Source of the DNA: Heteronotia binoei
Taxonomy: Eukaryota
Length of the DNA stretch: 64,000 bases
Assembly (NCBI RefSeq): GCF_032191835.1
Contig: NC_083224.1
Coordinates: 17,608,001 to 17,672,000, forward strand
Direction: 5' to 3'
The translations under genes were made by a program, and so were the position numbers. Numbering within the stretch: position 1 is the first letter of the stretch; every line of letters starts with the position of its first letter. The notes under the pieces were generated by a model. The model worked only from the letters and a program-made list of their open reading frames with translations. It had not been told where the DNA came from and did not search any database. Of the stretch, positions 11,832-55,655 are shown piece by piece.

Positions 11832-11946
11832 ATATGGGGAGGATCCGTGAAGGTGGAAGCAGAGTTCTCTGAGGCAGAAGGAGCTCCGTCAGAGGAAGGT
11901 CAGAGGGCGCAGGCCCAGGAGTGTGCCCAAGATGCCCTGTCCAGTG
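11832..11946 (+). CDS. Gene 1 coding exon 2 (acidic linker IWGGSVKVEAEF...)
   Basis: ttacag acceptor, g|gtaagg donor, 115 bp (phase 0 to 1), conserved in the paralogs. Confidence 0.8.
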
Positions 11947-12106
11947 GTAAGGGGGCCTCCCGCCCAGATGGCATCTGGGAATACAGTGAAGTTGTTTGGT
12001 AGAAAGTTCAGGACAGGAGAAAAGGGTAATACTTCTGCAGACTATGTAGGATGGAGTTCTGGAAAATGGTGCCATAGGATGTCATGATGGCCACTCCACT
12101 TTAAGG

Positions 12107-14750: not shown

Positions 14751-14963
14751 GTGTGTGTATGGGGGGAGGATGAACAGAAGATAGTTAGTAATCTTTCTCA
14801 AGGAAGCTTTTGTTCCTGCAGTCTTAGGAAGAGAGGCTCTGAACAGCCCAGCCTTTACGCATACTGAGCTCTGCATCCTGCACCCTCACAAACTCCCCCT
14901 GTTGGAAATGTCAAGTCTCTGCCCAGCATGATCTGTGATGAGGGGATCTGCTTCTTCTTTCAG

Positions 14964-15090
14964 TCTCCAGTTTCCTTTGAGGAGGTGGCCGTGTATTTCA
15001 CCATGGCGGAGTGGGGCCTGCTAGATCCGGGCCAAAAAGCCCTCTATAGTGAAGTCATGCTGGAGAACTATGGGAGTGTGGCTTTTCTGG
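14964..15090 (+). CDS. Gene 1 coding exon 4 (KRAB-A)
   Basis: [42 protein letters not shown]; 127-bp exon typical of KRAB-A; ttcag acceptor, g|gtaagg donor. Confidence 0.93.
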
Positions 15091-17544
15091 GTAAGGATCT
15101 CTTGTGGGTGCTAAAGGTGTGAATCGCCGCCATTGGGATGATGCACGAATCAACAGCAATAACTTTTTGTGAGGCCAGTGCAGTGTAATTGGCCACCACT
15201 AGGTGCCTTGAGAAGTTGGGGTGGCCATGAAAGTGATGTTCAGCAGAGCCAGGTAGATCGATACAAGCTACCCCACTGATCCAGGGGCAGCTGAGGCTAG
15301 TTCTGAGGCCGTCACCCAAGCCAGAAAGGGTGTCGTGGCCCGAGTCCAAGGCGGGAATTAGACAGCCTCAGAAAGACTCTGGAAGCAGCCAGATCCTGAT
15401 TTCGCAGTTGTCAGCCTTTACCACATCCCCTTCCCCAGATGGGATTTTGGCCATCCACTCTGACTGTAATCTGGAAAAGATCCATCTCCCTTAGAATGGT
15501 TAGCCTTGTGGGCTTTGATCCAGACCATGGTTTGGTCCTTCCAAAAGAAATTTTCCTCTTTCTTGGATTTCTTTCCTTCCCCATATAAAAATGATCCATC
15601 CCCCCACCCTTTCTCTGTCTGTCTAAGAAGCCAAGAATATAAGAGATCCTACGCTGGAGACAGACCGAGGCCTTGCATCTGAAAAATTGCTGCAGAGTTT
15701 TTCCGGAAGATCTGAAGAGACTGTTTCCTTCCCCAATCAACTGGTAGCAAGTGAGTATCCTTTACAGTTATATCAAGGGAATGGGGAAAGAATCCCCATG
15801 GGACCTTTCCTCTTCACTTCTAAGCAACACTTGGTTGGGTAGAATTCCCAAGCCTGAAGAGTGAGAGGGGGAGAGAGAGGGGAGGGGCCTTCGGGGGCCT
15901 GGAATCGGGAGGCTCAGAAGCTCCTTCAGGGGCTGAGCTCACTTGTGGCTGTTGAGTGGCTGCACTAGCCTTAAATACTAAATATTCCAAGGAATGGGAG
16001 ATTAGATAAGACCAGCCCTGCTAGATGAGGCCAAAGGCACACCAGCCCTTTCCTTCATTCTTCACATGGATGCCTTCAGGCCTTCTTGTTAGTTGCAGGG
16101 TTTGAATGCTTCCTTGGGAGCTGTTCTACCTTGCAGGGGTGTCCTATGGCAAGTAGTCCCACCAGTTAACCCAAGTCGAACCACAACAACCTCTGTTGTC
16201 ATGAGATGGATCAGTCCTCACCCGAAGAGAGTGGAATCGTGTGCTTCTGAAGAGATTCAATAGCCCAGTAAACAGAGAGACAAGTTCTCAGTTGAAGCAC
16301 AGTTGGTTGAGCCACAACAGAAGCGCCACAACAACCTCGTCTCCCCAAGAGGCAAGCAACCAACTCCTTCTCAAAGTTCCTCCCACCCTCTTGAGGCAGG
16401 AAAGTGTCTGCCACAAAAACCAGACAGACACAGACACAGAAAAGCCAAGTATACCTGTCTAATTAGTGCACTCTGATGCCCGGTTTTCTTCAAGGCTGGC
16501 TGACGCCATGACACCCCTATGCTGACAAACTAGCGTCTCCATGTTTAGATTACATCACCCAGGTCATGCTGAATAGGCATTGTACACCTTTATGTCCGGT
16601 GTGTGTTCCTTGCATGTTACAGGTGTTTTGGGAAGATGGAAGAGGACAGACTCTTCTCTGGCCTTATCTGGACTTTTTGTCACTTTGTGTTCCTCTGGGA
16701 TGGGCTATCAGAGTCTCTTACTCTACTGGAACAAGTCAATGACCTTGAGGCCCCATAAGCCAGGTTTTTTTGGCTATCTCTTGCTGGCAATAAGTGTTGA
16801 TGTGCCAGTGCTTAGTGAGGGTGGTCTTTAGTGACGCAAAGAATGAAGGCTTGCACAAAGCAGTGGTAAAACTACTATATACAATTTATTTACACCTCCA
16901 CTCTCCAAACCGACAGAATGCTCCGCTGCAACACCACCATACATAACCCACACATAGTAAAGTGTCTCTGTACATTTATACAATTCATCCACCCAGGTGA
17001 CCAATCAGCTTGCCGCTGAGTCATGCTGACATTGCCCAGGCTGATGCAATCTGGCAAGCAGCCGCCTCCTGTCACTTAGATGATCTACCTGGCAGATCAG
17101 TTACTTTCACTTTCCCAGCGTGTGCTTAGAAACTGTCATTGTCTTCCACAATATTAACAATAAGATGCACTCCTTTCCAGAGAGACAGGCTGACTTGGTG
17201 CGTCTAGGCAGGGGCCATTTTGTAGAAAAAGAGGTGCAGGAGCTCATTATCATATCCCATTATCATAACATTTCACATGCCACACTCTTTGCAACTCTCA
17301 ACGACAGTGGAAGGGAAGGGGCAGCTCGGCCTTCTTCTGGTCTTAATGAGGGCTGCTGGGGTGTGGCTATACTCCTGGTGGCTGCCTGGCCCCCCACCCT
17401 CCCTCACTACCAGTCTTTAAAAAGCCAGGGATTGGAGGGGCGGAGCGTCGCCGAACATGGTGGACGCACTTTAGTACTGCTCCAAGCCTTCCCTCCGAAA
17501 TCCCGGCCCTCCTGTAAAACCGCGGACGGGGAAAGCAGCTCCAA

Positions 17545-18540
17545 ATGGGAAAAACATTAAAAAACAAATCCAAGGCACCAGAAACACCAAAAACAACAAA
17601 GAAAAGGACGCCCCAGACGGTAAGGAAATTTTTTTCGCCTACCTCCTCACCGGGGCGGGAAAATCAAGCGACCCCAGTTATGGCGGCAAGACAGAGCCCT
17701 TCCGAGTTAGAGAACCTAAATAATGACGAGACTCAGATAACAAAAAAGGACTTAATGCAATTAAAAGAGGACATTCATGCTTTCTTTAAGGAGTCAATGA
17801 AGTCCTGGATAGACCCCATAAATAAAAAAGTTGAAGAACTGGCAAGCGACTTGGAAATAACCTCCAAAATGGCGGATCGCAATGCCGAAGCCTCACTTGC
17901 TTTACAGACCGAAATGAAACAAATAAAAGTCAATGAAGCAAGGCTTACCACACGAATTATAACACTTGAAAACAGATGGAGAGCCCTCAATTTGAAGGTC
18001 AGAGGGATCAAAGAGGGGTCAGAAGAAAATCTGGGTATTTTACCCTTTATAACTAAATGGTTGACGGAGGTCCTGGGTCGGGAAAACAGCGTAGTTCCGG
18101 AGATTACCAAGGCTATGAGACTGGGACCGGCTGCCATGGCAAGGACAGGAAAACCGCGGGATATAATGGTCCAGTTTTTAAACCCTACAATGAGAACAAG
18201 AGTACTCCAGGAAGCTAGAAAGAAAGGCACACTGACCCATGAAGGACAAAGAGTTCTGCTTCTTTTAGACTTGCCACCAGAAGCACTAGAGAAAAGAAGA
18301 CGCTTGAAGCTTTTCGCGACTAAACTATACAATGAAAACATTAGATTTCGTTGGAGTCCAGTATCAGACATTATTGTATATAAAGGAGGAGCTTTACTGA
18401 AAGCATCGGACTTGAAAACTGGAAAACTGCTCATGAACAAACTGAGTATTAAATTGTCCCAAAGGGACGAGGAAGACCTAAGAGCCATCTGCCCAGAACT
18501 AGAAGAGGGAGAGGAAGAACAAACTCCTACGACCACTTGA
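17545..18540 (+). CDS. ORF1: L1 ORF1p (coiled coil, RRM, CTD), 331 aa
   Basis: Heptad-rich segment followed by LENRWRALNLKVRGIKE and KPRDIMVQF, typical of L1 ORF1p; lies upstream of ORF2. Confidence 0.88.
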   Translation: MGKTLKNKSKAPETPKTTKKRTPQTVRKFFSPTSSPGRENQATPVMAARQSPSELENLNNDETQITKKDLMQLKEDIHAFFKESMKSWIDPINKKVEELASDLEITSKMADRNAEASLALQTEMKQIKVNEARLTTRIITLENRWRALNLKVRGIKEGSEENLGILPFITKWLTEVLGRENSVVPEITKAMRLGPAAMARTGKPRDIMVQFLNPTMRTRVLQEARKKGTLTHEGQRVLLLLDLPPEALEKRRRLKLFATKLYNENIRFRWSPVSDIIVYKGGALLKASDLKTGKLLMNKLSIKLSQRDEEDLRAICPELEEGEEEQTPTTT

Positions 18541-19326
18541 ACTATTAATAATTTGACAACGGGCTTAACTATAAGAAGAAAAGAAGAAATAAGACACTAT
18601 TTTAATATATACTGGACGCATCTTAAATGTACTTAAAAAGTTTCATGATTAGAAGTAATATCATTCACTACCACTAGAGGGTAGTGTTACACAAGTAAAT
18701 TAGACAGGTTTTGTACTAAAACTTTACTGATTGCGTAGTAGAATGTAACTCAAATATTACTCTGTATAAGTTTAATTGCATAGAAGACTAGGAGGGGAGT
18801 GTAAGTAATTAGAGGTATGCTTGAGTGAGGATGGGTATGAGTGTTGAAGAATTAGCTAAAATGAGTATGAATGAGATGTGAATGGAAGTAGACACAGTTA
18901 GCAATAGATGTGACATGAAAAATGCTATAAGCCATAAAAGCTATCTATAAAATGTTATGCTAAGATGAGGAATATAGTTCAGTCTGCATAGATCTTTATA
19001 GGAGGGGAGGAGGGAACTTTATGATATACAAGGATATATATGGATAAGCACAGTAAACTTGTAACATCGCCCCCGGGTAATAGGTAATAGGTGATAGGAT
19101 TCTGCATCTTTTCAGATAAGAAAGCAGTGAAAGAGCTTTCTTTGCTCTAGTTTGTATTCCCTAAGGGGAGGAGTCTCTGAAAAGGTTTCCTAGTTAGGAA
19201 GTTTAAGTTTGAAAGTTGTGTTTTAAAGTTAGGATTTGTATTGTAAGGTGGTGTGGCGTTCAAACACTACTGAAAATTGTTGTGACTAATATTTTTATCT
19301 ATATTTTTTAGTAGACTGTTGCAAAG

Positions 19327-22300
19327 ATGACACGTTCATATAAACTCCTTAGTTGGAATTGTAGAGGCCTTAATAATATTGTTAAGCGTAAGAGGCTACT
19401 CAACACGATGCAAAGAGAAAGAGCAAACATTGTGTGCCTACAGGAGACGCATCTAAAAAATACAAATGGTAAGCTATTGTCTTCAAACTGGTTTAACCAA
19501 AGTTATATGGCAGCAGGTACATCCAAATCTAGAGGGGTAGCAATCTTAATATCTAAATCAGTACCCTTTCAATGCCAAAAAGTAAAAGTGGACCCTAGAG
19601 GTCATTACATCTTTATTAATGGAGAAATCGAGGGCCAGCCATTAACAATAGCATCTTTGTACGCCCCAAATGTAAACCAAAAAGAATTTTTGCAGAATAC
19701 TCTACAACTACTATCAGAATTCCAGAAGGGAGATATAATAATTGGTGCAGATTTAAATTATATACTGGATCCCAAATTGGATAGGACATACAAGACAGGG
19801 AAAAAAATATTGAAGCCAACAGGTTTACAAGATATATTAGACACATTCTATTTGGTGGACTTATGGCGGACATTAAATCCAGGTACTAGACAATATACAT
19901 ACTACTCCAATGTTCACCAAATCCACACGAGAATTGATTATCTCCTAGTGAGTAAAAGAATGGCTAATCAAATTCAGGACGCAGATATAGGTCCACGCAC
20001 AATTTCAGACCACTCCTGGGTTGTGGGGTCACTCACCACCCAAAATGATGATGAGCAGGGTTATAATTGGAAACTGAATAAATTACTTCTGCAAGATGAA
20101 TTGATTTGTAAAAAAATTACAGCAGCAATACGGGAATACTTCAAATTTAACAACACCAAGGATGTAACACAAGGGACACTGTGGGACGCATTTAAAGCAG
20201 TTATTAGAGGGCAGCTAATAGCAATAGCCTCCAACCATAAAAAGGAAAGGCAATCGTTAATATTAGAACTTACCAATAACATTAAACACATGGAACAGCA
20301 ATACGCAAAAAAAGGAGGGAAAAAATTGCTTAGGAAGCTAGAACAGGAACGTAAAAAGCTGGAACTAATGGAAACATCCCAAATACAAAAGAACTTATTG
20401 ATACTCAAACAAAAATATTTTACCAAAACACCCAAATCAATAAAATTGCTCAAACAGAGGACTACGCAAAAAAAGGCCTCATATATTATTCATAACATGC
20501 GAAATCAACAGGGATCTCTAGTTACAAAAACTAGTGAAATAATCCAAGTTTTTCAAGAATTCTATCAGAAGCTATACGAGTCAAAGAACCCAGACCCAAA
20601 TACTATTAAGGAATATCTTACTTCTATAAACTATAATGTTAAAATATCCTCAGAACATAAGACATATTTAGAAAATGATATAACTCCTCTTGAGCTATCT
20701 GAAACCCTCAAACATATCAAAAACAATAAAGCCCCGGGCAGGGACGGTATCCCTATAGAATTCTATAAGGCATTTGAACAAGAACTGATGGACCCCCTGG
20801 CTTCCACCTGCAATTCAGTCATGCAAAGTGGGCAAATGCCTAATACTTGGTCTGAAGCAAGGATTACAGTTATCCCTAAACCGGGCAAGGACAAGCAAAA
20901 TCCAGCCTCATTCAGACCTATCTCCGTTTTGAATAACGATTTTAAAATCTTCTCTGCGCTGATGGCTAATAGATTGAATAACATCATTACAGATTATATA
21001 CACATAGACCAATCAGGTTTTATCCCCACAAGAACGTTAACGGACAATATCCGTAAAACAATAGACTTAATATATTTGGGGAAACAAAGACAAGAAGAAT
21101 CGGTCCTTTTGGCCATCGACGCAGAGAAAGCCTTTGACAGGGTGGAGGTCCCGTATTTAAATACTCTATTACAATATATGGGATTTGGCCAGAAATTTTT
21201 AACATCTATTAAAACTTTATATGCAAAGCCGAAGGCTCAAATTTACATTAACAACTATAGATCTGTAGACCTGGAGTTGCATAGGGGTACGAGGCAAGGA
21301 TGTCCCCTGTCTCCTATATTATTTGCACTGTCTATAGAACCGCTAGCTTTTGCAGTACGTAATGAGAAACTGATAACAGGCATCTCAGTAGGAAATGAAG
21401 AGTATAAATTGAGTTTATTTGCTGATGACGCAGTTTTTTATGTTACAAACCCATTACAATCTATTACCTCGTTGGTACATCATATCCAAAAATTCGGGGA
21501 AATATCAGGTTTTAAAATAAATTATTCAAAATCTGAGTTATACCCAATAGTCTTATCTCAAAACACTAAGTCAAACATATTAAACGCTTTTCCGTTTAAG
21601 TGGGTTCAAAAATCTATTAGACACCTGGGTATTCAAATACCATTAAATTTGCAAGACCTTTATGATGTCAACTATAAATCAATGGATAGTACCATCAAAA
21701 TACAACTAGAACAGTGGAACAAATTAAACTTGACTTTGTTAGAAAAGATCGATATGATTAAAACCTTTATTCTTCCTAAATATCTGTTTCTATTTTACAA
21801 TCTACCTTGCTATATCTCAACAAAGGACTTTAAAAACAGACAAAACTTTATTTCCAAGTTCTTGTGGTCAAACAAAAAACCAAGATTTCATTTTAATTTA
21901 ATGACGAGACCAACAAAACAGGGGGGGTTGAGTTTACCTAATTTTGAATCATATTATTTAGCTGCAAATCTAAAAAACATCTTAATGTATGCAATAAAGG
22001 ATTGCACGAAAGCATGGGTAAAAATTGAAGCATCATATTTAACAGATGACCATCTATGGGAAGCCATTTGGAACACTCCTAAAGACAGACACCTTACTGT
22101 ACATAATAACCCTTACTTGGCCTTGACATTAAAAATATGGGATAAGTACAAAAAAATCTTAATACCATCCACTTCCCCGATGGCAAGCTTTCTGGGGCAA
22201 GCGTGGTTTAAACCAGGACGTGCACTTGGGGATTTTAGGGTTTGGAGAGAGGCAGGAATATACCAATTCCAAAATATCATTAAGAATGGTCAAATGCTTA

Positions 22301-23160
22301 CTAAAACACAATTGGAGACCCAATTTAAAATATTAATCCCATGGTTTCAATACCAACAAATACATTATACACTGCACAACCCCAGAATTACAGAACTAAT
22401 TGACAGGCCGCTAACAACCTTTGAAAACCTGCTGAGAAGGAACACAGAGCGAATCAAAACACTAACGTCAACTATATATAACTTAATTAATGATAAAGAG
22501 TGGTCTGGCATTACAAACCAACAGAAAGCTTGGGAAAAAGACTGTGGCATAGCTTTTTCTCAGGAACAATGGCAATCTATATGGGAATCCCCACTCTACA
22601 CCACATACTCTTTAAATCTGAAACTTCAAAACTATAAACTGTACGCAAGATGGTATTTGACGCCTAAGAAACTGTTTTTGGCTCACATAAAACCAACTTC
22701 AGAATGTTGGAAAAATTGCAAGCAGGAAGGGTCGTTCATTCATTGTTGGTGGCTGTGCCCAGGAATTAACAAATTTTGGAGAGAAATTAAACTTATAATT
22801 GATAAGATTGCAGCAGATGATATACCATTTACACCTGAATCTTTTCTTTTAAATTATTGGCCTACTTTGAAACTCTCGAAACTGAGAAAGGAATTAATAA
22901 CTCTCTTGTTAATGGCGGCAAAGCTACTGATTGCACAATTTTGGAAAAAGGATGCGTCCCCTACGGCACAACAATGGCTGACAAAAGTTTGGGAGGTAGC
23001 AGCTCTGGATAAATTAGCAATACAAATAAAGGCAATGGAGACACAAAGGAAAAACAACAATTTTATTGAAAAATGGTTTCCGTTCTTTAAATACATAAAT
23101 TCAGAAGAAGAGCCTCAGAAATATATTCCAAAGAAATATATTGACTTTGCATATTATTGA
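19327..23160 (+). CDS. ORF2: L1 ORF2p (APE endonuclease, reverse transcriptase, Cys-rich C-terminus), 1277 aa
   Basis: EN motifs SWNCRGL, CLQETH, GADLN, RIDY, SDH; RT motifs DAEKAFD, GTRQGCPLSP, FADD; C-terminal CWKNC...HCWWLC. Confidence 0.97.
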   Translation: MTRSYKLLSWNCRGLNNIVKRKRLLNTMQRERANIVCLQETHLKNTNGKLLSSNWFNQSYMAAGTSKSRGVAILISKSVPFQCQKVKVDPRGHYIFINGEIEGQPLTIASLYAPNVNQKEFLQNTLQLLSEFQKGDIIIGADLNYILDPKLDRTYKTGKKILKPTGLQDILDTFYLVDLWRTLNPGTRQYTYYSNVHQIHTRIDYLLVSKRMANQIQDADIGPRTISDHSWVVGSLTTQNDDEQGYNWKLNKLLLQDELICKKITAAIREYFKFNNTKDVTQGTLWDAFKAVIRGQLIAIASNHKKERQSLILELTNNIKHMEQQYAKKGGKKLLRKLEQERKKLELMETSQIQKNLLILKQKYFTKTPKSIKLLKQRTTQKKASYIIHNMRNQQGSLVTKTSEIIQVFQEFYQKLYESKNPDPNTIKEYLTSINYNVKISSEHKTYLENDITPLELSETLKHIKNNKAPGRDGIPIEFYKAFEQELMDPLASTCNSVMQSGQMPNTWSEARITVIPKPGKDKQNPASFRPISVLNNDFKIFSALMANRLNNIITDYIHIDQSGFIPTRTLTDNIRKTIDLIYLGKQRQEESVLLAIDAEKAFDRVEVPYLNTLLQYMGFGQKFLTSIKTLYAKPKAQIYINNYRSVDLELHRGTRQGCPLSPILFALSIEPLAFAVRNEKLITGISVGNEEYKLSLFADDAVFYVTNPLQSITSLVHHIQKFGEISGFKINYSKSELYPIVLSQNTKSNILNAFPFKWVQKSIRHLGIQIPLNLQDLYDVNYKSMDSTIKIQLEQWNKLNLTLLEKIDMIKTFILPKYLFLFYNLPCYISTKDFKNRQNFISKFLWSNKKPRFHFNLMTRPTKQGGLSLPNFESYYLAANLKNILMYAIKDCTKAWVKIEASYLTDDHLWEAIWNTPKDRHLTVHNNPYLALTLKIWDKYKKILIPSTSPMASFLGQAWFKPGRALGDFRVWREAGIYQFQNIIKNGQMLTKTQLETQFKILIPWFQYQQIHYTLHNPRITELIDRPLTTFENLLRRNTERIKTLTSTIYNLINDKEWSGITNQQKAWEKDCGIAFSQEQWQSIWESPLYTTYSLNLKLQNYKLYARWYLTPKKLFLAHIKPTSECWKNCKQEGSFIHCWWLCPGINKFWREIKLIIDKIAADDIPFTPESFLLNYWPTLKLSKLRKELITLLLMAAKLLIAQFWKKDASPTAQQWLTKVWEVAALDKLAIQIKAMETQRKNNNFIEKWFPFFKYINSEEEPQKYIPKKYIDFAYY

Positions 23161-24274
23161 AAACCTTATTGAAAACCTTATGTAACAGTTAAATTGCATA
23201 TTGTTTCATCCATTGACAACCAACGCTATAAAGACTTAGAGGTAGCTTAAGGAAATTTATTTACCAATGTAATATGGATGATGTTTATTTTTTACGTTTT
23301 TAAGTTTTGTTTGTTAGTTAAAAATATAATGATAACATTGATTGTCATTGAAAAATTAATAAAAATTTAAAGTTTTAAAAAAAAAAAAAGCCAGGGATTT
23401 ATAGCTTTGCAGACAAGAAAGGTAGCTGGGGAGGAGGTGAGGAGACAAGGAGGTGGGGGGACAACACTGGAGATTCAGGAGCTGAGCTCCTGCTCAATCT
23501 GAGGCCTGCTTCTAGGAAAGGCAGAAATGCCTGGATGATTCAGAAATTGTTGCGCATTAGACAATGGGCCCAGCTACGGTGTAGAGAATGCTCCAGGAAT
23601 AATGAGAGAATGCTCCTGACCTTGAGAAAGGTGGCTCTACGCTGCAGGACTGGTTGTCTCTTCAGTTGTTACCTGCTCCCCCCACCCCCAACAAATGGCA
23701 CCTCTTTGAAAACCACTGTGGGGTTCACTCAGTTATATCCTGGTTAGATCCACAGAAAAGGTGTATTTGGGGAAGGCTGGAAACCAGCTCCTCCTGGCTC
23801 TCTTCGCAATTAGAAGGAAACTCTCAGTGCAGTTGTATTGTATGTATGTAGTTAGTAGGCTTATATTCTGCCTTTTCCCGTAGATGGGTTCAGGGCAAAT
23901 CACAACATCAATAATAATTAAAAACCTACAGATTTAAAACCAGAAATAATACAGTAAAATAAAAGTTGCAGGACTGGATTTCATGGGAACTTCTTGTATT
24001 TTATCATCAAGAGCAGAGAGTCAAAAAAGCTGCACAGCAAGTCATACGGGAGCAGCGGGGGAATCGTTCTTTGCCACCTTCCCCCTTAAAATATATTTGG
24101 GGAGAGGACGGAGGGGCAGAATACGGGAGGTCCTGGCAGGGGTAAGGTGAGACCAGCAGCTCAGTTTCGGCAGAAAGATCTTATAAAAGAAATGCAGACC
24201 CAGGAGTGAGGAATGCCAGACTGGTGGCTTGGCTTCTTGCATGGGTGCTGATTGAAACTATTTCCTTATTCCAG

Positions 24275-24394
24275 AAGCAGATGCAGAAGAGACAGTTGGG
24301 GAATTCCACAAGTTCTCTTTGGAAATAGTCAAGAATGAAGATGCTGACGAAAACTCTGGAGATGGACCACAGAGGCAGGAGGAAAGCCACGCAG
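24275..24394 (+). CDS. Gene 1 coding exon 5 (120-bp acidic linker)
   Basis: ttattccag acceptor, gcag|gtaaga donor, symmetric phase 1-1, homolog at 41485-41604. Confidence 0.72.
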
Positions 24395-24700
24395 GTAAGA
24401 GGAGGGATAAGCCCATTCCTTGCCAAAGAGGGGTCCTCCCTGAAACCCCAGTCCATGAGGAATGGTCAGTCAACAAAAGAAGGAACAAAGGCCTCTGTGT
24501 TTAAACAGAGAATCCACTGCAGGGAAAAGGAAAACGAAAGTGTGGCCTTTGCAAAGACCATCTGTCAGAGAATGAATGTCATTTCGCAAACACTAATTCC
24601 CTTAGGAGAGCAATTGCATAACTGCTTGGAGTACAGAAACAGCTTCCATCATAACACAGCCCTTACTTCACATCAAAGAAGTCACACAGGTGGGGAGCCA

Positions 24701-25247
24701 AGGTATTCCCAATTTAGGGAGTTTCATGCATCATTTAAAGGTAGCAAAGTGAAGCTACAATCCATTAGTGGAGCACAAATCTTGGGGATGGGCTCTTTTG
24801 CATGCACTCTTTCCTGGTTATGGGGTAAATGACTTGGAATGGGCAATTGTGAATGTTTCAGCGACTCTGGAGCAGAGTTTCAATAAAACAATATTGGCTA
24901 TGTATGATTTTCAAGCAGAAGTAGATTCTATGGCTAGAATGGTAATCCAAAATAGACATGCTTTAGATATAATTTCAGCACAGCAAGGAGGTGTGTGTGC
25001 TCTGATACAGGAAGAATGTTGCTTCCATATTGGTGAAATTCCTTTCCAAATTGGTGGCAATGCTTTGTAGGCATTCCTCCCACAAATAAAGGATAGGCCA
25101 GGTTGTGCTAATTTCACTGTAAATAAATCACTAGAGTGTTTTTCCCTGCCCAAGGTTCTTATCCCTTGAACAGACGCTGGCACTCCAGAAGCTCATACAA
25201 ACCTGCTGGAGGAACAGTCCCTGAATTTAAGGGCTCTGTACAAAAGT
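24701..25247. mobile_element. env: Isolated retroviral env fragment, internally inverted
   Basis: + strand: fusion peptide, heptads, IQNRHALDII immunosuppressive-domain-like motif, CALIQEECC (CX6CC). - strand: LSFICGRNAYKALPPIWKG (SU C-terminal motif). Absent from genes 2 and 3. Confidence 0.85.
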
Positions 25248-25430
25248 AGCCACAAACATTGGTAAGAGTCCCAACCAAGTGTCTCTGATGCAGAAAGCTT
25301 AACTGTACTTAAAAAGTGTATATTATTGTACACTTCAGTGTGCAGCAGGAGGAAGGCACTGAAATATTTGGATCGTGGATAAAACTTCAGGACCACATCA
25401 GACCTCCTTGTCTCTCTCTCTTTATTCCAG

Positions 25431-27145
25431 CAGGAGGTGATCAGAGGAATGAGGAGGATGAGGAACTGCATCATGTATCACCAGATGAAGTAACAATTGA
25501 AGATGTGAGAAGAAACGTCAGAATTCAAAGCAGGGCTCAGAGGCAGAAAGTCAGGCTCAGAGTGAAGAAGAGGGATAAATCCATACCTTGCCAGGGGGCG
25601 AATTTCCAGGAAGTAATTCACATGTTGCAGGAAACACACAAGTGCCTGGAGTGTGGAATGAACTTCTCAGATCAAACCCAATCTAATGTCCATTCTGGAA
25701 TGCACAGTGGAAAGATGAACCATCAGTGCCTGGAGTGTGGAAAGGCCGTGACTGGCAGAGCAGAGTTCATCAGACATCTAAGGACACATACAGGAGAGAA
25801 ACCTTATAGCTGCTCAGACTGTGGCAAGAGTTTCTCACAGAAACCAGACCTTCTTCAACACTACAGAATTCATTCAGCAGAGAAGCCCTTTATCTATTTC
25901 AAGGATGGAGTTATGTTTTTGGCTGGAAAAAAGTGTAAAATACAATTTCCAAAGCACAGCACAATGAAGGCATGTAAATGCATTCAATGTGGAAAGTACT
26001 TCCGATACAAATCACAGCTCCTTTTGCACCAAAGGATCCACAAACTGTTTGAATGCTCAGAGTGTGGGAAGAGATTCAGTCAGAGTGGCCATCTTCAATG
26101 TCATTTAAGAACCCACTCAGGAGACAAGCCTTTTGAATGCACACAGTGTGAGAAGAGATTCAGTCAGAGTAGCAATCTTCAACGTCATTTTAGAACCCAT
26201 ACAGGGCAGAAGCCTTTTGAATGCTTAGAGTGTGAGAAGAGATTCAGTGACAGTTGTAGTCTTCAAAGTCATCTAAGAATCCATACAGGGGAGAAGCTTT
26301 TTGAATGCTCAGAGTGTGGGAAGAGATTCAGCCGCAATGGCCATCTTCAAAATCATCTAAGAACCCACACAGGAGAGAAGCCTTTTGAATGCTCAGAGTG
26401 TGGGAAAGGATTCAAACAGAGTGGCGCTCTTCAAAAGCATCAAAGAACCCACACAGGGGAAAAGCCTTTTGAATGCTCAGAATGTGGGAAGAGATTCAGC
26501 CATAGTGACCATCTTCAAATGCATCGAAGAACCCACACAGGGGAGAGGCCTTTTGAATGCTCAGAATGTGGGAAGAGATTCAGACAGAGTGGCGCTCTTC
26601 AAAAACATCTAGGAACCCACACAGGAGAGAAGCCTTTTGAATGCTCACAGTGTGGGAAGAGATTCAGTCAGAGTAGCAATCTTCAAATTCATCTAAGAAT
26701 CCACACAGGGGAGAAGCCTTTTGAATGCTCAGAGTGTGGGAGAAGATTCAGCCAGAGTGGTGCTCTTCAAAGTCATCTAAGAACCCACACAGGGGAGAAG
26801 CCTTTTGAATGCTCAGGGTGTGGAAAGAGATTCAGCCACAGTGGCCATCTTAAAATTCATCTAAGAACCCATACAGGGGAGAAGCCTTTTGAATGCACAA
26901 AATGTGGAAAGAGATTCAGCCAGCGTACTGCTCTTCAAAAGCATCGAAGAATCCATACAGGGGAGAAGCCTTTTCAGTGCTCAGAGTGTGGGAAGAGATT
27001 TAGCCACAGTGGCAATCTTCAGCGTCATCTACAAACTCACACAGAGGAGAAGGCTTTTGAATGCTCAGAGTGTGGGAAGAGATTCAGCCGTAGTGGCCAT
27101 CTTCAAGTTCATCAAAGAACCCACACAAGGGAGAAGCCTTTTTAA
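25431..27145 (+). CDS. Gene 1 terminal exon, C2H2 array (17 intact fingers by manual count)
   Basis: tttattccag acceptor; repeated CxxC-x12-HxxxH with TGEKPF linkers; stop TAA at 27143-27145. Confidence 0.93.
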
Positions 27146-27289
<144 letters not shown>

Positions 27290-30200
27290 TAAACAGGGGA
27301 GAAGTCTTTTGAATGTTCAGAGTGTAGATTGAGATTCAGACAGAGTGGCGCTCTTCAAAAGCACTGAATAACCAATCCAGGGGAGAAGACTTTTGCATGC
27401 TCAGAGTGCGGGAAGAGATTCATTCACCATCTTCAACAGCATCAAGGAATCCAGAGGGCATAAAGTTTTGGAATAGAAAGGGATCCAATCAGTATAATTA
27501 TCTTCCACATTATCTAAGAACCCACACAAGGAAAAACCATGGAACTTCTTAGCCCAGCAGTGCTGAACTTGTTTGTTACAATGATCTGACAGAAACGTCT
27601 CTTTGTCGGCCAGGCTATGTATTCCATACAATTATTGCCACATAGCAGAGATAGAAACTTTAGAAAAGACATAGGTGTACCCAATAACAATATTATTTTT
27701 TACTCAGTAGACAAACTTACTTAAATAATGAACAACCTTTACAGTATTTTCGTTATTTAGAGGTCCTTGGAAACTGATCTCTCTTTCTTTGAATTACTGC
27801 ATCAATATCTGGAGTCAACTGTACATGATGTAACAATCTTGAGTGTGCTGGTTTGGTGTGTATCTGTAAGTTGAGAATGTACTTTTGATTTATGGGCATT
27901 TATTCCAGAACAGAGCTGTTCTGAGACATACATCGTTCCAAACATTTACATATTTTTAGAAGCAAAAGTCTTAAGGTGGGGGTAGTTTGGGCCCCAACAT
28001 TGGTAAAATTTGCTAATGTCAACTTCAGAAAGCTGATCCTTCTATACAGCATTACACTGGTCCTCCACCTGTCTGCAATTTGTGTGATTTTTAAATTGGT
28101 AGGTAGGAGCAGCGTGAATGTCCCATTTTCCCAACTGTAGTGACTCACTATGTGTCATCCACCTTCAGAACACCTCCCACCTTAGAGAAACTTCTCCTGT
28201 CCAACTCCCTTCTCTTCTATTTGGCATAAGTCTTCCCATTCTGAAAATAAATTTCCTCACTAAGTCAATCAGCAACTTTTTTCTCCTCCACTCTGAAAGC
28301 ATTTTTGCTTGTGAAGTAGGGTTTCTTACCCATTTAGAGAGGTTCACCCCAAATCATTCACATAGAATAGAAACTCTTCAAGGAACTGGATTCACTGCCC
28401 TCCACAGTAGCTGAATTGACCACAAAAATCATGAACCCTCCACAGATTCATCAGCCTCCTATCAATGACCAGACCTCCTCAATCTGCCCTTGTTTCCCAC
28501 CACCTCGGTGTGATGCGTCCACACCAATCCACTCTCCTCCAAATTCCAGACTGCTCCCATTCCTTTCCTTGCAGTTAATTCCCGCTCAGAGACCTGATCT
28601 TGTCGTGATCTGAGGCCTAGTGTGGGTGGCCTAGAGGGCAGAGAGAAGCCTGAGTAGGAGTCGATAAAGGGGCCTACATTTCCCCGGATTCCTGATGCCG
28701 CTCTGACTGGGTGGCAGAGATTTCGAGGAAAAAGGAGCCCAAGAGGGGGTGGGACCTGAGAAGAAAGCATAAATAGGCTTGGCTGGAAAGGGAAGTTCTC
28801 TCTGCTGAGGCTAGTCTGGAGTAGGCTGCAGCTGTGGAGAAATCCCTCACCCTAAGGAGGTGGTGAGTTTTGGTATTAGAGGAAGGGGGCATATAGATAG
28901 TCAGGTTAGGGTTGTTTATTTCTTTGCCACCAACCTTTACTGTTTCTTTATTCACTGTTGCACTCAAAGTCTTTACTACCCACCTATTGTTTGATCATTT
29001 ATTAAAAAATCTGTTGTTAAACTGCCCGGATCCTCATATCTGCTTGGTCACAGTTAAAAGGTATTTGTTAATAAGGAAGAGATGTGGGTTAGGTGGGTGC
29101 TCTGAGCCCTCCCATACAGACTTACCAGAGTGGTGGCAGCCAGCAGAAGGCCCTTCCTGTCCCCTGCTGTATAACACCTTCCACGAAGACACATATACAC
29201 CCCATGGTGCTGAGGTTCGAGCATGGGGACTAACAACTGGAAGATCCAGGTTCATAAGTCCAACTCTGCCATAGAAGCTGCTTTGTGACTTTGGGCCAAT
29301 CAGTCTCTCAGCCTAAGATACCCCGCACAGATGATGAGAGGACAAAAACATAGATGAGTTAAACGATACTCGGAGGAAAAGCAAGGAAAAGATCCCTGGA
29401 AAACAAAATGAGAAAATAAGACCAGCACTTTCTATCACCCTAAACAGGTGTATTTCTTCTTCCCACCCATGGATTTCCAGTAGAATGTTTTCCAAATTGG
29501 AAAGGTGTCAACGATGCATTTTATTTCCCTATATGTAAACATATAAGGATATCTGGATTCGTTTCAGATGAAGGTGAAGTAAAATTGTTAGAGGATTAAC
29601 ATTTTATTGTTGGGGTATTTTTTTTGTTATTTTGTATGTGTGCATGAGCCTGTGTGTGTGCCTCTGGCCCTCATGCTGACCTCTGGAGACTGTCCCTGCG
29701 TATATGGAGGAGATTCAGAGAGGCGGCTAAATAAAGGACGTTTTGGAGAATGTCAATTCAGAGAGTCGCTATAAATCGGAAGTGACATGACAGGTCTCAA
29801 CACACACATAGCAAATGAATAAGAAAGGACAGTGGAACTTGTGGGAATGTTTTTTTCCTTTGCCAACTGAAGTGTCTTTGAAACCAAGAAGCTCGTGCAT
29901 GTTTATGTGAGCAGAGAATGCCAAGAAACCTCTCTCCTCAGTTTGTAAAGACTTATTCGAATAGCAGGAGTAGCTACCTGCTTGTGAAAAACTATCTGGT
30001 CTTTATATTTCTACAACGTTACCTGATTCTTGTGCCTGTTCACCTCATAAGTCCTAAACCTGAATCCTACCTGACCATGGCCCTTAAAAGTGAAATAAAA
30101 CAGGTTAAGGTTTTGATTTACCATCTTCCTCTCATGTGCCATTATCAAACTAACAGCTGGGTGGGACAGGCAGGAAAACGAAGAAGAGGGGCTGCTCAGC

Positions 30201-34365: not shown

Positions 34366-34900
34366 CATAACATCTACAACGGATTTTTAAAATAGTCAAT
34401 ACTGGTGTTTTTGTTGTCTGGAGGACTAAACAGGAATATATTTAAATGTTTGATATGTGATATAGCACAATGACATTAATCCTGATCCGCAAACTGCAAC
34501 ACGTGTGTATGTATGTATATGTGTGTGTGTGTATACACACACATATTGGCCACTGTGTGACACAGAGTGTTGGACTGGATGGGCCATTGGCCTGATCCAA
34601 CATGGCTTCTCATGTTCTTAAGGATACTCCTTCTGAACCACTGGGGTAATCCTTAGATGTCTCTTCACCAGGTTCAGTGATGTAACTCTGTTTTCTTTTC
34701 TTCTTGCCTTTCTGATATCTTTCCTTCACCCTCTTCACAGCCAAGTGAATGAGAGTGTCTTTCCAGAGTCAAAGGCAACCAAGAGAAAGGGGAAGGAGAT
34801 TGAAGAAAAGGACCCCGAAGGGCTTGGAAGTGGGAAGATATCAAAGAAAGGTCCCCATCCCCTCCAAGCAGGGAGTGGTGCTGAATTTTGGGAAAGAGCC

Positions 34901-35221
34901 ATGCCAGAGAACTTGGTTCAGGACCCTGTGACCACAGATGGATGCAGCCAATGCTTCCGGCAGTTCTGTTACCAGGAGGCTGATGGGCCCCGAGAAGTTT
35001 GCAGCCGGCTCCACGGACTTTGCAACCAGTGGCTGGAGCCAGAGAGGCGCACCAAGAAGGAGATGGTGGACCTGGTGATCCTGGAGCAGTTCCTGGCCAT
35101 CCTGCCGCAGGAAGTGCAGGGCTGGGTGAGAGGATGCGGGCCAGAGAGCAGTTCCCAGGCAGTGGCCCTGGCCGAAGGTTTCCTCCTGAGTCAGGCGGAG
35201 GAGAAGAGGCAGGCACAGCAG
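34901..35221 (+). CDS. ZKSCAN-like gene 2, coding exon 1 (SCAN domain)
   Basis: SCAN motif nearly identical to gene 1; acceptor at 34740; the orthologous ATG reads ATT, so the first in-frame ATG is 34901; donor cag|gtgagg. Confidence 0.85.
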
Positions 35222-37518
35222 GTGAGGGGCTTTCAGTCACTTTGAGCCAGTTTGGTGTAGTGGTTAAGTGTGCAGACTCTGGGAGAACTGAGTATGATTC
35301 CCCACTCCTCCACTTGCAGGCCGTGGAATGGCCCCGGGTGGGGCATGGCTCTCGCAAGAGTTGTCCTAGAAAGGGCAACTTCTGGGAGAGCCCTCTCAGC
35401 CCCACCTACTTCACAGGTGTCTGTTGTGGGGGAAGAAGATATAGGAGATTCTAAGCTGCTCTGAGACTCTGATTCAGAGAGAAGGGCAGAGTATAAATCT
35501 GCAGTTTTCTGTTCAAGCAATGAATTTATCCTAAGCTTCCTGCCAGCATTTTCTGTGTGTGCGTTAACTGCTATCAAGTCATTTCTGACTTAAGGCTATC
35601 CTAGGAATGTTCTCTCGTTAACAGCCTTGCTCAGTTCTTGCAGACTGAGGGCCTTTGTGGCTTCCTTGATTGAGTCAATCCATCACGTTTGGTCTTCCTC
35701 TTTTCCTGTTGCGTTCAACTTTTCTAAGCATTATTGCTTTTTCCAGTGACTCCTGTTTTATCCTAATATCACCAAAATCCAATAGCCTCATTTGAGTCAT
35801 TTAACTTCCAGGGAAAGTTGAGTCTAGATTTGATCTAGAACCTGTTTGTTTATCTTTTTTGGCAGACCTCGGTATCTGTAGAAACTGTAAACGCTCCTTC
35901 ATCGGCACAGAAAATCAACTTTCTTCCTGTCAGCTTTCTTCCTTGTTCAGCTTTTTCTCACACGCATATAGTAATGAGGAATACTGTGGCTCAAATTAAC
36001 TTGATCTTGGTCACCAAGGACACATCCTTATGCTTAAAAACCTTTTCTGGCTCCCTCATGGTTACCCTTCTGAGACTCAGTCTCCTGATTTCTTCTTTGC
36101 AGTCTCCCTCTTGGTTGATGATGGACGCAAGGAACAGAAAATCATGAATGATTTCAGGTTCTTCATTATCAACCTTAAATTTCTGTGTAATTCCACACTA
36201 GTCATTTCTTTTGTCTTCCTGGTATTCAGCTGTCATCTTCCTTTAGCACGTTCTGCTTTAGCCTTCATGAGACATTATTTCTTGTCTTCACTACGTTCTG
36301 CCTCTAATGTGTCATCTGCATATCTCAGACTGTTAATGTTCCTCCCCCCAGTTTTCACCCCACCTTCATCTAAATCTAATCCATCTTTCCTTATGATATC
36401 TTCTCTTTTATAGATTGAGGAGACAGGGAGATAAAATATATCCTAGTCTAGCGCCTTAGCCAATTGGAAACCATTCTATGTGTCCGTATTCTGTCCAAAC
36501 AGTGGCCACTTGCCCAGAGTACAGGTTGTGCATCAAAACAGACATTGCAACGCACCCATTTCTTTTCAAACCAAGCATTGGTTTGGTTTTTTTTAACCCC
36601 TGCAGTCAAAAGCTTTGATGTTAGCTATGAATCACAAGCTGGTATTCTGAAATTCTCTCCTGTGTTCCATTAACCGATGTACATTTGCAGTATGATCTCA
36701 AGTGCCACTTCCTTTTGTGAATCCACCTGAAATGGAATATCTGGCGTTGCTCTTTCAATACGTGACAAAAGTCCTACTTGTTAATTTTATTTTATTCGAT
36801 TGTTGTGAAATGTCAAGCATCACGACTTGCATGAGGAATTAATGCAATGGTCTGATAGTTCCTACATTTCGGAACTGGAATGTGAAATGCGTGTTTCCAG
36901 TCTGTGAGCCCTTGTTTTGTTTCCATCTTTGTTAGCATATTCTTGTTATGATTTTGATGGACTCCTTTTGTGTGGCTTGAAATAACTCTTCTGATATCGC
37001 ATCTCCTCCTGGTGGTTTTTTTCTTCCAATTCTGCTTCGTGCAGCTTTACTTTCTAAAACTCTTACCTTCTGGTTCGAAAGGTTCTTGAAAGGATTTTGT
37101 CCTCCTTTCATCTCTTTATTTATCCTATCTGTATATCAAGATCATGGACTGCTGAATCTCACCATCGGACATATTGCACTTTATGATTTTTTTCTACTGT
37201 TTTAAATTGTTTTTGATTAGTTTATGGTGAACTGTGCCGGTTCGGCTCTTTCAAGCTGCCCTGAGCCTGCCTCAACGGGGAGGGCGGGATAGAAATTGAA
37301 CTAAAAATAAAATAAATATTGTTCCTCTCAGTTCTTAGATATTTTTACCTCTAGATGATTCACTGGGCTGTGAGGAAAACCCAAACCTAGTTCTTGCCCT
37401 TGTGGATAAAGCAGCCCTGGCGGTGGAGTCAGGGATGAGGAGTCTGGGAGTAGGTCCGGATCCATCTTTTCAGCCTGTTCCGTTCCTTCTCTTGCCCCTC
37501 TCCCTTGTTTTGTTCCAG

Positions 37519-37633
37519 GTGTGGGAGGGACCCGTGAAGGTGGAAGGAAGCTTCTCAGAGGTGGAAGGAGCTCCGTCAGAGGAAGGTCAGAGGGTGCAGG
37601 CCCAGGAGCGTGCCCAAGATGCCCCATCAAGTG
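37519..37633 (+). CDS. Gene 2 coding exon 2
   Basis: ttccag acceptor, 115 bp, VWEGPVKVEGSF..., g|gtaagg donor. Confidence 0.8.
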
Positions 37634-38887
37634 GTAAGGGGGCCTCCCGCCCAGAGGGGATTGGGGCTCTTGTTGGGCAGAAGTTTCGGTTCAGGAGAAA
37701 AGGGAAATACTTCTGCAGACCGCATAGATTGGTGTTCTGGGAAATAGTGCCATAGTATGTCATGATGGCCACTCCGCTTTAAGGGGAAATGTACCGATTG
37801 ATGGAGAGCTATTCCATTTGTTTTTACATTAATGGAAATATGCATATCTCTCCTTCCTTCCATTAGAAAGACTCAAGGTGGCTCAAAAAAGAAAAGGAAG
37901 ACAAAGTTGGGTGTAGCTATTAGGCTGATCAGGATGGCCCAAGACTCCCCAAGGTCATCAGATCTCAGAAGCTAAGAATAGTCAGCCCTGGTTAGTTTTT
38001 GGATTGGGAGACCTACAAAGAAATTCAGGGCTGCTGTGCAGAGACAGGCAATGGCTAAACACTTCTGAATGTCTCTTGCCTTGAGGAACTGAAGTCACCA
38101 TGTCAGCTGTGACTTGGCAGTACTTTAGACAGACAGGCAGACAGATACACATTCTGTTCTGGGGCAGCAAATCTTGGAAAACCCACTGTCAGAGGCCAGT
38201 AAGTTGGGCTCTGTGTGCCAGCTTAAAGACTTTTCAGGGGGCATCTCGGTGGCAACAGTCAGAAAGAGGATACTGGGTTAGGAATGCCAGGCCATGGCCT
38301 GGCCCCCCTGTGAGGTTTGAGGGCGGAGCAGGGGCTGAATATGGTGTCATTTTCTTGTCTCATCCAACCAAATACCTGAATATTAAGTCAGACTATCAGC
38401 AGACCCTCTGGAAACACATTGGCAGCACCCTAGAGTTTTAGCTGATGTGCTAAAAATCACATGGGTTTGGGATTGGATGTGTGCTGTCACATGGTTTCTA
38501 GTCACCTGTTTTTCTCCTGCCAGTCCAGGCTTCAGGATGGGTAAGAAGGCCCAGGAGGCGGGAGGATGTCATGCCTGGGCTTTTGGTCTGATCTAGCAGG
38601 AATACTGAAGCCATTGGAGCTCCAGGGCTCACAGGGCATATTTCAAGCCTCACAGAAGTCTGAAATGTGTTGGCAGTGTTTATAACCCCTTGAGGTTTGT
38701 AGCTACCTCAGGTTTGTTTTTCACCTCTCCACCAGGTTACTGAATCTTATTACAAAATCTTCTAGAGTGTAAAGAAGACAGGGTTTCACAACCTTGGGAA
38801 TTGGGATGCATAAGGAAGATTGAGACAAGCTAACTAGACAGGAATTTGAGGCTAAAATTCTTCTTTCCCATTTTGTCTCCCTTGCAG

Positions 38888-38958
38888 GCAGTGAAGAGAC
38901 GTTATTGAGCCCTTTTCTTTGCAGAGAAGTGGAAACGCCTCCTCAGCCTCTGGTGCAG
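38888..38958 (+). CDS. Gene 2 coding exon 3
   Basis: cttgcag acceptor, 71 bp, cag|gtaggg donor. Confidence 0.78.
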
Positions 38959-39124
38959 GTAGGGGAGGATGAATGGAGGATAGGCTGTCTGAGTAAGAAG
39001 GGCTCTGAACAGCCCTGCCGTTGCACATACTGAGTTTTGCCTCCTGCACCCTCACAAACTCCTCCTGTCAAGAGTGTCAAATCTCGGTGTGATTTGTGAT
39101 GAGGGAATCTGCTTCTTCTTTCAG

Positions 39125-39251
39125 TCCCTGTATTCCTTTGAGGAGGTGGCCGTGTATTTCACCATGGCAGAGTGGGACCTGCTGGATCCAGGCCAAAAAG
39201 CCCTCTACAGGGAAGTCATGCTGGAGAACTACGGGAGCGTGGCTTTTCTGG
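39125..39251 (+). CDS. Gene 2 coding exon 4 (KRAB-A)
   Basis: [42 protein letters not shown], 127 bp, canonical splice sites. Confidence 0.93.
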
Positions 39252-55584: not shown

Positions 55585-55655
55585 GCAGCGAAGAGACCTT
55601 ATCAAGCCGTATTCTTTGCAGAGAAGTGGAAATGCTCTTTCAACCTCTGGTTCAG
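55585..55655 (+). CDS. Gene 3 coding exon 3
   Basis: ccctttcag acceptor, 71 bp, cag|gtaggg donor. Confidence 0.78.

Follow-up and report, generated by a model that had tools for sequence, protein, structure and literature searches.

Intron gains whose origin can still be traced are rare in vertebrates, and the mechanisms behind them have usually been erased (PMC3257199, PMC3443670). Tandem genomic duplication, according to the model of Rogers (1989), is one of the listed mechanisms, and it includes an "imprecise" kind of gain in which latent splice sites inside the duplicate are employed (PMC3443670). Intronization, in turn, converts exon sequence into intron by means of new splice sites (Irimia et al. 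2008, cited in PMC3443670). In mammalian KRAB and SCAN zinc-finger genes, extra introns of the coding region are found beyond the ancestral two or three, and the mechanism is not given (Kordis 2011, PMC3257199). Here we analyse a stretch of 64,000 nucleotides (nt) from the gecko Heteronotia binoei (contig NC_083224.1, positions 17,608,001 to 17,672,000; hereafter the window, with positions counted from its first letter). The window holds three tandem paralogous SCAN-KRAB-C2H2 zinc-finger genes on the plus strand, and we focus on the short exon preceding the terminal zinc-finger exon in genes 1 and 2, here called exon 5, and on the intron that follows it. Together, exon 5 and this intron form a decayed copy of the terminal-exon start, in tandem with it. 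The best explanation, to which we assign a probability of roughly 0.7, is that the duplicate was first spliced as a long exon and was later shortened by a new 5′ splice site (donor).

Exon 5 opens with the last two bases of one split codon and closes with the first base of another, which puts both its ends in phase 1; the terminal exon also starts in phase 1. The first bases after the two 3′ splice sites (acceptors) are the same, and in gene 2 the acceptors share 18 identical bases. An earlier note on this DNA, made from the letters alone, had remarked on these nearly identical acceptors and had claimed that exon 5, when read through its donor, aligns with the start of the terminal exon. Both statements are borne out. 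In a six-frame comparison within the window, the best non-self matches of the exon 5 frame read through the donor are the three terminal-exon starts (E 3e-6, 3e-4 and 0.011), with 41-42% identity over 44-51 residues and with alignments extending 17 residues beyond the donor. The two exon starts also align significantly at the nucleotide level, a point on which the note had staked its claim. Specifically, blastn gives 42/56 identities spanning the gene 1 donor (E 5e-7), and a nucleotide profile of the three terminal-exon starts has its top matches in the masked window at 24258-24715 (E 5e-23) and 41470-42020 (E 2e-21); in the corresponding fossil region of gene 3 it reaches E 2e-6. Moreover, a profile-profile comparison of long upstream units with downstream units yields a probability of 99.8% and E 1e-28 over 133 columns, with the linker and fingers F1, F2 and F3 in order. 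Homology of neighbouring exons, equal phase and a length divisible by three all hold for exon 5 and the terminal exon. Chance or low-complexity similarity was considered and rejected on the E-values and the collinearity.

The extent of the duplication is given by a lengthened terminal-exon profile (to +760), applied after removal of two private insertions (24701-25247 and 42035-42145). This profile matches gene 1 with E 9e-28 and gene 2 with E 2e-24, collinearly over model positions 17-634. The matching stretch starts 44 nt ahead of the acceptor, covers the linker and fingers 1-3, and stops about 575 nt into the exon, inside finger 4. Directly after model position 634 the next copy starts at position 2, and the 60 nt preceding the real terminal exon follow immediately. 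The duplicated unit measures about 600-620 nt, and its two copies abut, with the new intron running from a site in the first to a site in the second. Abutting units are also present in another Heteronotia locus, L002 (10886-11447, then 11450), and in the Eublepharis locus L004 (2096-2657, then 2663). The tandem duplication of the zinc-finger exon proposed in the earlier note is therefore correct for the start of the exon but not for the whole exon or array, as the copy stops in finger 4 and the upstream copy held at most about 3.5 fingers. The note's further idea, that a new DNA-binding array had been swapped in, is not sustained: there is no sign of a swap, and the live array just runs on from the downstream copy.

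The intron that follows exon 5 still carries the remains of these fingers. In gene 1, the fossil finger 3′, placed by the earlier note at about 24615-24695, is located at 24617-24691 and is a copy of finger 3; two more decayed fingers precede it in one frame, and, counted from the last histidine of finger 1′, those of fingers 2′ and 3′ follow at exactly 28 and 56 residues (2 x 28). When a finger-unit profile is run outside the live arrays, finger 3′ of gene 1 ranks first (E 0.0025) and that of gene 3 second (E 0.015); the fossil finger of gene 2 ranks fourth and is not significant alone (E 1). Pfam recognised no finger domain in the fossil fingers of the window. A search by tblastn with the long exon of Sphaerodactylus, described below, matches gene 1 at 24286-24501 (E 5e-16) and 24470-24697 (E 1e-15), in two frames and thus with one frameshift. 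On exon 5 and the intron of gene 2, the same exon aligns in a single frame over 101 residues, with 50% identity (E 3e-25), straight across the donor. The insertion private to the gene 1 intron contains a sense fragment of a retroviral envelope transmembrane subunit at 24843-25064 (Pfam TLV_coat, E 4e-14, profile 433-486 of 560, CX6CC motif region). A 111-nt insertion resembling a short interspersed element (SINE) lies at 42035-42145 and is private to the new intron of gene 2, and a similar SINE tail is found at about 57640-57705 in gene 3.

RNA evidence comes from three raw runs, bearing the same species label, and one contig set, mapped to positions 38800-42900 of gene 2. This gene was chosen because its KRAB exon, exon 5 and terminal exon lie within 6 kb, gene 1 being split by an L1 element. 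The junction 41604>42215, one of two named in the earlier note, skips 610 nt with GT..AG ends and is seen in three reads of run X4, 10 reads of run X5 and one contig of set X1, from another study; with these 13 reads and one contig, the GTAAGA donor is in use in gene-2-like transcripts. The junction 39251>41485, joining the KRAB exon to exon 5, is represented by one read and one contig. In X5, depth is about 16-35 in exon 5 (bin-share corrected), 23 in the first bin of the terminal exon and 0-0.4 in the fossil-finger intron; for the new intron of gene 2 as a whole it is 0-0.9. No junction skipping exon 5 is present among those listed for gene 2, and exon 5 and the terminal exon are joined in one transcript, so that the mutually exclusive use of copies was not encountered. 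Use of the proximal acceptor places an Ala between the cassette, as we call the peptide encoded by exon 5, and the linker, and the same is found in the Heteronotia proteins P0009 and P0010. The splicing of exon 5 holds for gene-2-like transcripts of the gene family; in gene 1, exon 5 likewise ends at GTAAGA, is preceded by a good acceptor and keeps its reading frame open.

These data bear on the idea that exon 5 is a dead finger-exon fragment lying in an intron, its likeness to an exon being incidental. The loss of the exon from gene 3 and the absence of excess conservation between genes 1 and 2 would be in keeping with such an idea. It is, however, hardly tenable in view of the junction reads on both sides, the exon-level depth next to an empty intron in gene-2-like transcripts, the retention of the 120-nt length and of the phase in at least seven copies from two genera, and the presence of the cassette in many annotated proteins. 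As a pseudo-exon, exon 5 was rejected on the spliced RNA junctions.

Some further features were seen in the RNA of gene 2. The optional spacer after KRAB-A has a depth near zero, the KRAB exon being spliced straight to exon 5, and this spacer (39780-39878, plus strand) has an inverted duplicate at 40703-40825 on the minus strand, about 0.9 kb downstream. One X1 contig shows a junction 41604>42280, to an AG 65 nt inside the terminal exon that breaks the frame, and may derive from a paralog. Finally, a repeat at 40307-40717 in a gene 2 intron reaches a depth in the hundreds, with many junctions that go back and carry short ATGATTCT-like fillers. Copies of it lie at 49584-49864 and 54692-54980, and it probably represents a mobile element that is transcribed in abundance elsewhere in the genome.

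Outside the window, the short form is common. Many RefSeq models of H. binoei and Gekko japonicus have a cassette of 39-41 residues between KRAB and the linker; P0005, P0008-P0011 and P0022 have one copy of it, and P0006 and P0007 have two. In the Heteronotia locus L002, a 120-nt cassette ends at the donor GCAG/GTAAGAGGAGGGATAAGCCC (the slash marks the exon end) and is followed by frame-shifted fossil fingers. The Heteronotia locus L003 has three upstream units (4774-5200, 6707-7112 and 8729-9161) about 2 kb apart, two of which are used by the protein model; each has GTAAGA and fossils, which places the re-amplification of the unit after the origin of the donor. The end of the Heteronotia RefSeq model P0002 (residues 521-650) runs from the cassette across GTAAGA into fossil fingers, which is probably an annotation artefact of this gene family.

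A longer form is found in other geckos. In Sphaerodactylus townsendi P0012 and Eublepharis macularius P0013, the whole upstream unit is coding and is followed by a normal linker. Its parts are the cassette, the remaining linker, two fingers in a degenerate state and finger 3, which is intact and scores 26.3 bits in Sphaerodactylus and 24.6 bits in Eublepharis against Pfam zf-C2H2 (cut-off 25.2). This long exon ends at a donor whose GT belongs to the glycine codon of the His-Thr/Ser-Gly linker after finger 3. In the Eublepharis intron, what is left of the upstream copy can be recognised, followed by the old intron end. Annotated exon limits show that sequence homologous to the fossil intron is exonic in relatives. 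An exhaustive profile search returned further long forms in KRAB genes of S. townsendi (P0014, P0016, P0026 and P0030), E. macularius (P0015 and P0017) and Paroedura picta (P0040), as well as donors at other places, namely seven codons after the window donor in Euleptes P0023 and inside finger 2′ in S. townsendi P0021, P0044 and P0076. The long form is present in all three families, Eublepharidae, Sphaerodactylidae and Gekkonidae, and the short form was seen in Gekkonidae only. About 20 named proteins have an upstream unit, all of them from geckos (six genera), and non-gecko squamate matches have a single unit at the protein level; this distribution rests on one exhaustive profile search with an upstream-only query, which leaves downstream-type relatives outside geckos unsampled. 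In two word-based protein searches the closest public proteins to the window genes are likewise all from geckos, a result that cannot show absence elsewhere. The orthologs with an intact upstream array anticipated in the earlier note thus have a partial counterpart: related geckos keep part of the copy coding, with one intact finger, but only fingers 1-3 and part of finger 4 were copied and the first two are degenerate.

The donor of the short form arose inside formerly coding sequence, as previously suggested. GTAAGA is found at 24395, 41605 and 57775, and in 7/7 short-form copies. The claim that it is kept in all three genes of the window is right as regards the motif but not the exon, as gene 3 retains the donor but only a 67-nt remnant of exon 5 with no acceptor, and the Heteronotia cassette peptide finds no match in gene 3 when mapped onto the window. 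In place of the acceptor and exon start, gene 3 has repeat sequence (56923-57774), where a chance AG at 57709-57710 would give a frame-breaking exon of 64 nt. Homologous codons lack a phase-1 consensus donor both in the downstream copies, compared within the window as the sole ones returned by the scan (AGA GTG AAG AAG or AGG GTA AAG AAG), and in the upstream copy of Sphaerodactylus (CAT GTA AAG AAG). A new splice site was therefore generated by mutation in former exon sequence, although the exact substitutions cannot be ordered. An older donor is also indicated, since every upstream copy whose DNA was read has GGT after finger 3 (window 24689-24691 and 41899-41901; L002, L001 and L004). In gene 1 this relic reads CAG/GTGGGG, with the boundary at 24689/24690, and it appears to be unused because read depth is zero there in gene-2-like RNA. 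In the live arrays (25433-27560, 42217-44260 and 58230-61370), none of the 61 glycine codons of His-x-Gly linkers is GGT (36 GGG, 22 GGA and 3 GGC), a count in which the fingers share descent and are not an independent sample.

The order of the two forms could be imagined the other way round, with a short GTAAGA cassette first and the long exons of Eublepharis, Sphaerodactylus and Paroedura derived from it by donor loss and read-through. Both donors could have coexisted as alternatives, and the upstream copy of Eublepharis has a deletion covering the GTAAGA region. Nevertheless, a C2H2 finger is still intact in the long forms and a frame of 125-139 codons is open, features that a former intron would not have preserved; the parent-like downstream copies have no such donor, and the long form occurs in three families as opposed to one for the short form. 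We consequently hold this reversed order to be very improbable, and regard the long form as the older one because of its live finger and open frame.

A tree of the units, based on an alignment of 44 columns, separates upstream from downstream units into two groups with branch support 100/99. As each group contains all three gecko families, one duplication predates these families. Putting together tree, donors and exon forms, the following series of events can be proposed. In an ancestral gene, before the split of Eublepharidae, Sphaerodactylidae and Gekkonidae, a unit of about 0.6 kb would have been duplicated in tandem, starting some 13-44 nt upstream of the zinc-finger-exon acceptor, taking in the linker and fingers 1-3 and ending within finger 4. 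The upstream copy would then have become an in-frame exon of about 375-417 nt, with the GT of the glycine codon after finger 3 serving as donor and spliced to the duplicated acceptor, so that former exon sequence, followed by 44 nt of old intron, would have made up the new intron; the gene models of Eublepharis, Sphaerodactylus and Paroedura would preserve this stage. Later, in a gekkonid cluster that includes the window, the Lys/Arg-rich part of the linker may have acquired CAG/GTAAGA, 295 nt upstream of the older donor. This would have shrunk the exon to 120 nt (40 residues of acidic repeat, phase 1/1), and the three upstream fingers would have become intron and decayed. At present, the cassette would represent a second acidic repeat that lengthens the spacer between KRAB and the finger array. 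As regards the intronisation of an upstream array, the earlier note was correct in that upstream fingers became intron; the process seems, however, to have involved two steps, with the long exon first and a donor 295 nt upstream later, and never a whole array.

Several observations weigh against this explanation. The RNA junctions are not specific to gene 1: genes 1 and 2 hardly differ over the final 83 nt of exon 5 and the initial 54 nt of the terminal exon, and their junction reads can scarcely be told apart; moreover, read variants such as 41505 A>G, present in all reads, match neither gene exactly and point to a contribution of other alleles or paralogs. The long-exon forms are gene predictions known from annotation. 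The upstream edge of the duplication is weakly defined: the match of the 44 nt before exon 5 of gene 1, though at the expected place, has E 1.5 on its own, and a profile of the intron tail alone finds nothing significant in the rest of the window, its best match (E 1.5) lying just before exon 5 of gene 2. Between genes 1 and 2, the identity of exon 5 (92.5%) is hardly above that of the fossil intron (90.5%), and five of the six changed codons in exon 5 alter the protein. Lastly, the upstream copy has an "RRNK" motif before finger 1, as in non-gecko genes, and the downstream copy has none, a pattern that fits a fusion of paralogs as well as a later change in the downstream copy.

In such a fusion, a deletion or unequal crossover between two neighbouring diverged paralogs would have joined a gene A, contributing the 5′ exons and the zinc-finger exon up to finger 4, to a gene B, contributing the last 44 nt of intron and the zinc-finger exon, and the gene would really have received a different finger array, as in the swap of the earlier note. 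The final structure would be identical to the one observed, so that structure cannot separate fusion from local duplication. The genes do sit in tandem clusters, recombinant units exist (P0039, P0027, P0154 and P0015), upstream and downstream units are far apart in the tree (branch sum of about 1.5 changes per column), and it is the upstream unit, not the downstream one, that shares the RRNK motif and its spacing with single-unit genes of Rhineura, Podarcis and Hemicordylus. Yet the linkers of non-gecko single-unit genes score equally well or better with the downstream-linker model, although they were retrieved by an upstream-only profile; Rhineura scores 29.1 bits with the downstream model against 21.6 with the upstream one, and Hemicordylus 24.1 against less than 15. 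In addition, every strongly upstream-like named protein is from a gecko, Eublepharis P0015 combines features of both units, and a local duplication of 0.6 kb is the simpler event. On this comparison of sequences we consider a fusion unlikely, and the duplication of the zinc-finger-exon start probably took place locally, within the gene itself.

As for a role of the cassette, its peptide has 12 acidic and three basic residues and is a repeat of the normal linker's acidic first half. When gene 2 is compared with a Heteronotia paralog, the cassette is 87.5% identical with no indel; the fossil part, with 12 gap columns, reaches 76%, and the values for fossil part and tail are 76-77%. The small excess of conservation and the altered codons between genes 1 and 2 mean that selection on the cassette is weakly shown. 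Its lengthening of the KRAB-to-finger spacer might be nearly neutral or of mild use.

The coordinates of the features are collected in the table. Common to the three genes are one exon for SCAN, one for KRAB-A and a long terminal one for the C2H2 fingers, as recognised by Pfam, a finger motif scan and self-comparison of the window. The motif scan counts 18, 15 and 31 finger motifs in the arrays of genes 1, 2 and 3, respectively, with a tandem period of 84 nt, and the arrays are matched by Pfam zf-C2H2.

Table. Features of the three zinc-finger genes, with exon limits obtained by mapping Heteronotia proteins onto the window; the last two rows refer to loci of related geckos.
Feature	Position	Strand	Remarks
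Gene 1 SCAN exon	8805-9224	+	SCAN domain, Pfam PF02023, E 2e-35
Gene 1 further exon	11829-11948	+	
Gene 1 KRAB-A exon	14955-15089	+	KRAB-A box, Pfam PF01352, E 4e-21
Gene 1 optional spacer	15630-15752	+	
Gene 1 3′ splice region before exon 5	24231-24274	+	upstream copy of the duplicated intron end; aligns with the 44 nt preceding the terminal-exon acceptor (model 17-60)
Gene 1 exon 5	24275-24394	+	120 nt, 40 codons, phase 1/1, open frame; copy of the acidic first half of the zinc-finger-exon linker
Gene 1 intronised former coding sequence	24395-24700	+	GTAAGA donor, rest of linker (IPCQ block), fossil fingers 1′, 2′ and 3′
Gene 1 private insertion in new intron	24701-25247	+	547 nt; absent from genes 2 and 3
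Gene 1 new intron tail	25248-25430	+	decayed copy of the stretch after finger 3 and part of finger 4, then the 44-nt intron end and acceptor of the downstream copy
Gene 1 terminal zinc-finger exon, coding part	25431-27145	+	linker and at least 17 fingers; open frame to stop 27143-27145; downstream, parent-like copy
Gene 2 SCAN exon	34799-35230	+	SCAN domain, Pfam PF02023, E 1e-36
Gene 2 further exons	37516-37635, 38887-38958	+	
Gene 2 KRAB-A exon	39122-39250	+	KRAB-A box, Pfam PF01352, E 9e-21
Gene 2 optional spacer	39780-39878	+	
Gene 2 exon 5	41485-41604	+	120 nt; 92.5% identical to gene 1 exon 5; spliced in RNA
Gene 2 new intron	41605-42214	+	610 nt, GT..AG; fossil fingers in the exon 5 frame
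Gene 2 terminal zinc-finger exon, coding part	42215-43977	+	open frame, finger motifs, RNA
Gene 3 SCAN exon	52242-52673	+	
Gene 3 further exons	55103-55207, 55584-55655	+	
Gene 3 KRAB-A exon	55811-55990	+	
Gene 3 optional spacer	56368-56424	+	partial
Gene 3 exon 5 remnant	57708-57774	+	no intact exon 5; last 67 nt survive; 2-nt deletion; acceptor and first 51 nt replaced by repeats
Gene 3 fossil region	57775-58227	+	453 nt; GTAAGA motif and fossil sequence as in genes 1 and 2
Gene 3 terminal zinc-finger exon, coding part	58228-61277	+	about 30 fingers; open frame, finger motifs
Sphaerodactylus long exon	L001 5867-6283		417 nt; donor CACACAG/GTGAGG
Eublepharis long exon	L004 2134-2508		375 nt; donor CACTCTG/GTGAGG; intron 207 nt

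Other elements of the window are of a repetitive nature. Between the KRAB region and exon 5 of gene 1 lies a sense L1-like insertion (17419-23399) with an open frame of 1277 residues (19327-23160), which genes 2 and 3 do not have. Two arrays of a 67-nt tandem repeat (2210-2676 and 46971-47502) contain 7-8 copies each with 97% matches and are about 96% identical to each other, and a short inverted copy of the repeat is found at 34505-34620. At 7810-8239, a 223-nt unit occurs twice, with tRNA-like matches on the minus strand at 7943-8014 (53.7 bits) and 8166-8237 (44.9 bits) that are probably the heads of tRNA-derived SINEs. A run of N occupies 11177-11324. No ribozyme family was found in a whole-window Rfam scan at gathering thresholds, and no more permissive scan was made.

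The locus is of interest because its sequence directly reveals how a new intron and a new coding exon originated, the parent copy lying alongside. The duplication junction is common to three gecko families, an earlier, longer-exon stage with a working finger is found in living species, and the latest stage is confirmed by RNA. Zinc-finger genes can, in this manner, shed fingers by a shift of splice site instead of a deletion of DNA. For the annotation of gecko genomes, the duplication accounts for the one to three acidic repeats of 40 residues in gene models and for the wrong read-on into fossil fingers, as in Heteronotia P0002. We also put forward, tentatively and as a possibility with the odds rather against it, that duplications reaching from the intron before the finger exon into the array readily yield a spliceable in-frame exon, and would thus be a general and repeatable route in zinc-finger genes. 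The basis for this proposal is that the His-Thr-Gly-Glu-Lys-Pro linker is one synonymous change away from the 5′ splice consensus (ACA GGT GAG reads CAG/GTGAG). If true, zinc-finger genes could repeatedly gain spacer exons, shed fingers or re-join arrays, and the avoidance of GGT at the linker glycine in live arrays would be explained; geckos would then preserve the full series of single unit, long exon with a live finger, intermediate donors and short cassette with fossil fingers.

A literature search for this event in geckos or in zinc-finger genes found no description, and the case appears to be undescribed. The route itself had been called unusual in the earlier note, a judgement that does not stand, as tandem-duplication gain with latent splice sites and intronization have both been described (PMC3443670). 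The gecko genes appear to add a new example, unusually complete, of mechanisms already known; the kind of mechanism is not new. As in intron gain by tandem duplication, there are two tandem copies, with the donor in the first and the acceptor in the second, and the intron consists of duplicated, formerly exonic sequence; as the coding sequence has been lengthened, the gain is of the imprecise form. The precise form, in which both sites come from a duplicated AGGT, does not apply, since the donors are the GT of a linker glycine or GTAAGA. Unlike in the general model, the gecko duplicate spans an existing 3′ splice site, so that the acceptor is a copy of a working one and not a duplicated AGGT, and a donor is provided by GT in a zinc-finger linker codon. 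In common with intronization, 295 nt that are coding in related geckos are now intron, behind a donor absent from the parent copy; in the geckos, however, this took place on a redundant duplicate instead of unique coding sequence, and the exon end was shifted without the exon being split. With tandem exon duplication giving rise to cassette exons, the locus shares homologous adjacent exons of equal phase and lengths divisible by three, and further copies exist in Heteronotia (two in P0006 and P0007, three units in L003); nevertheless, both gecko copies are included together, and only the first 120 nt of the 0.6-kb duplicate are still exon. Finally, the gene family and the extra introns of the coding region are the same as in the survey of Kordis (2011, PMC3257199), but whereas that survey counts placental introns, the origin of the gecko intron can be traced base by base.

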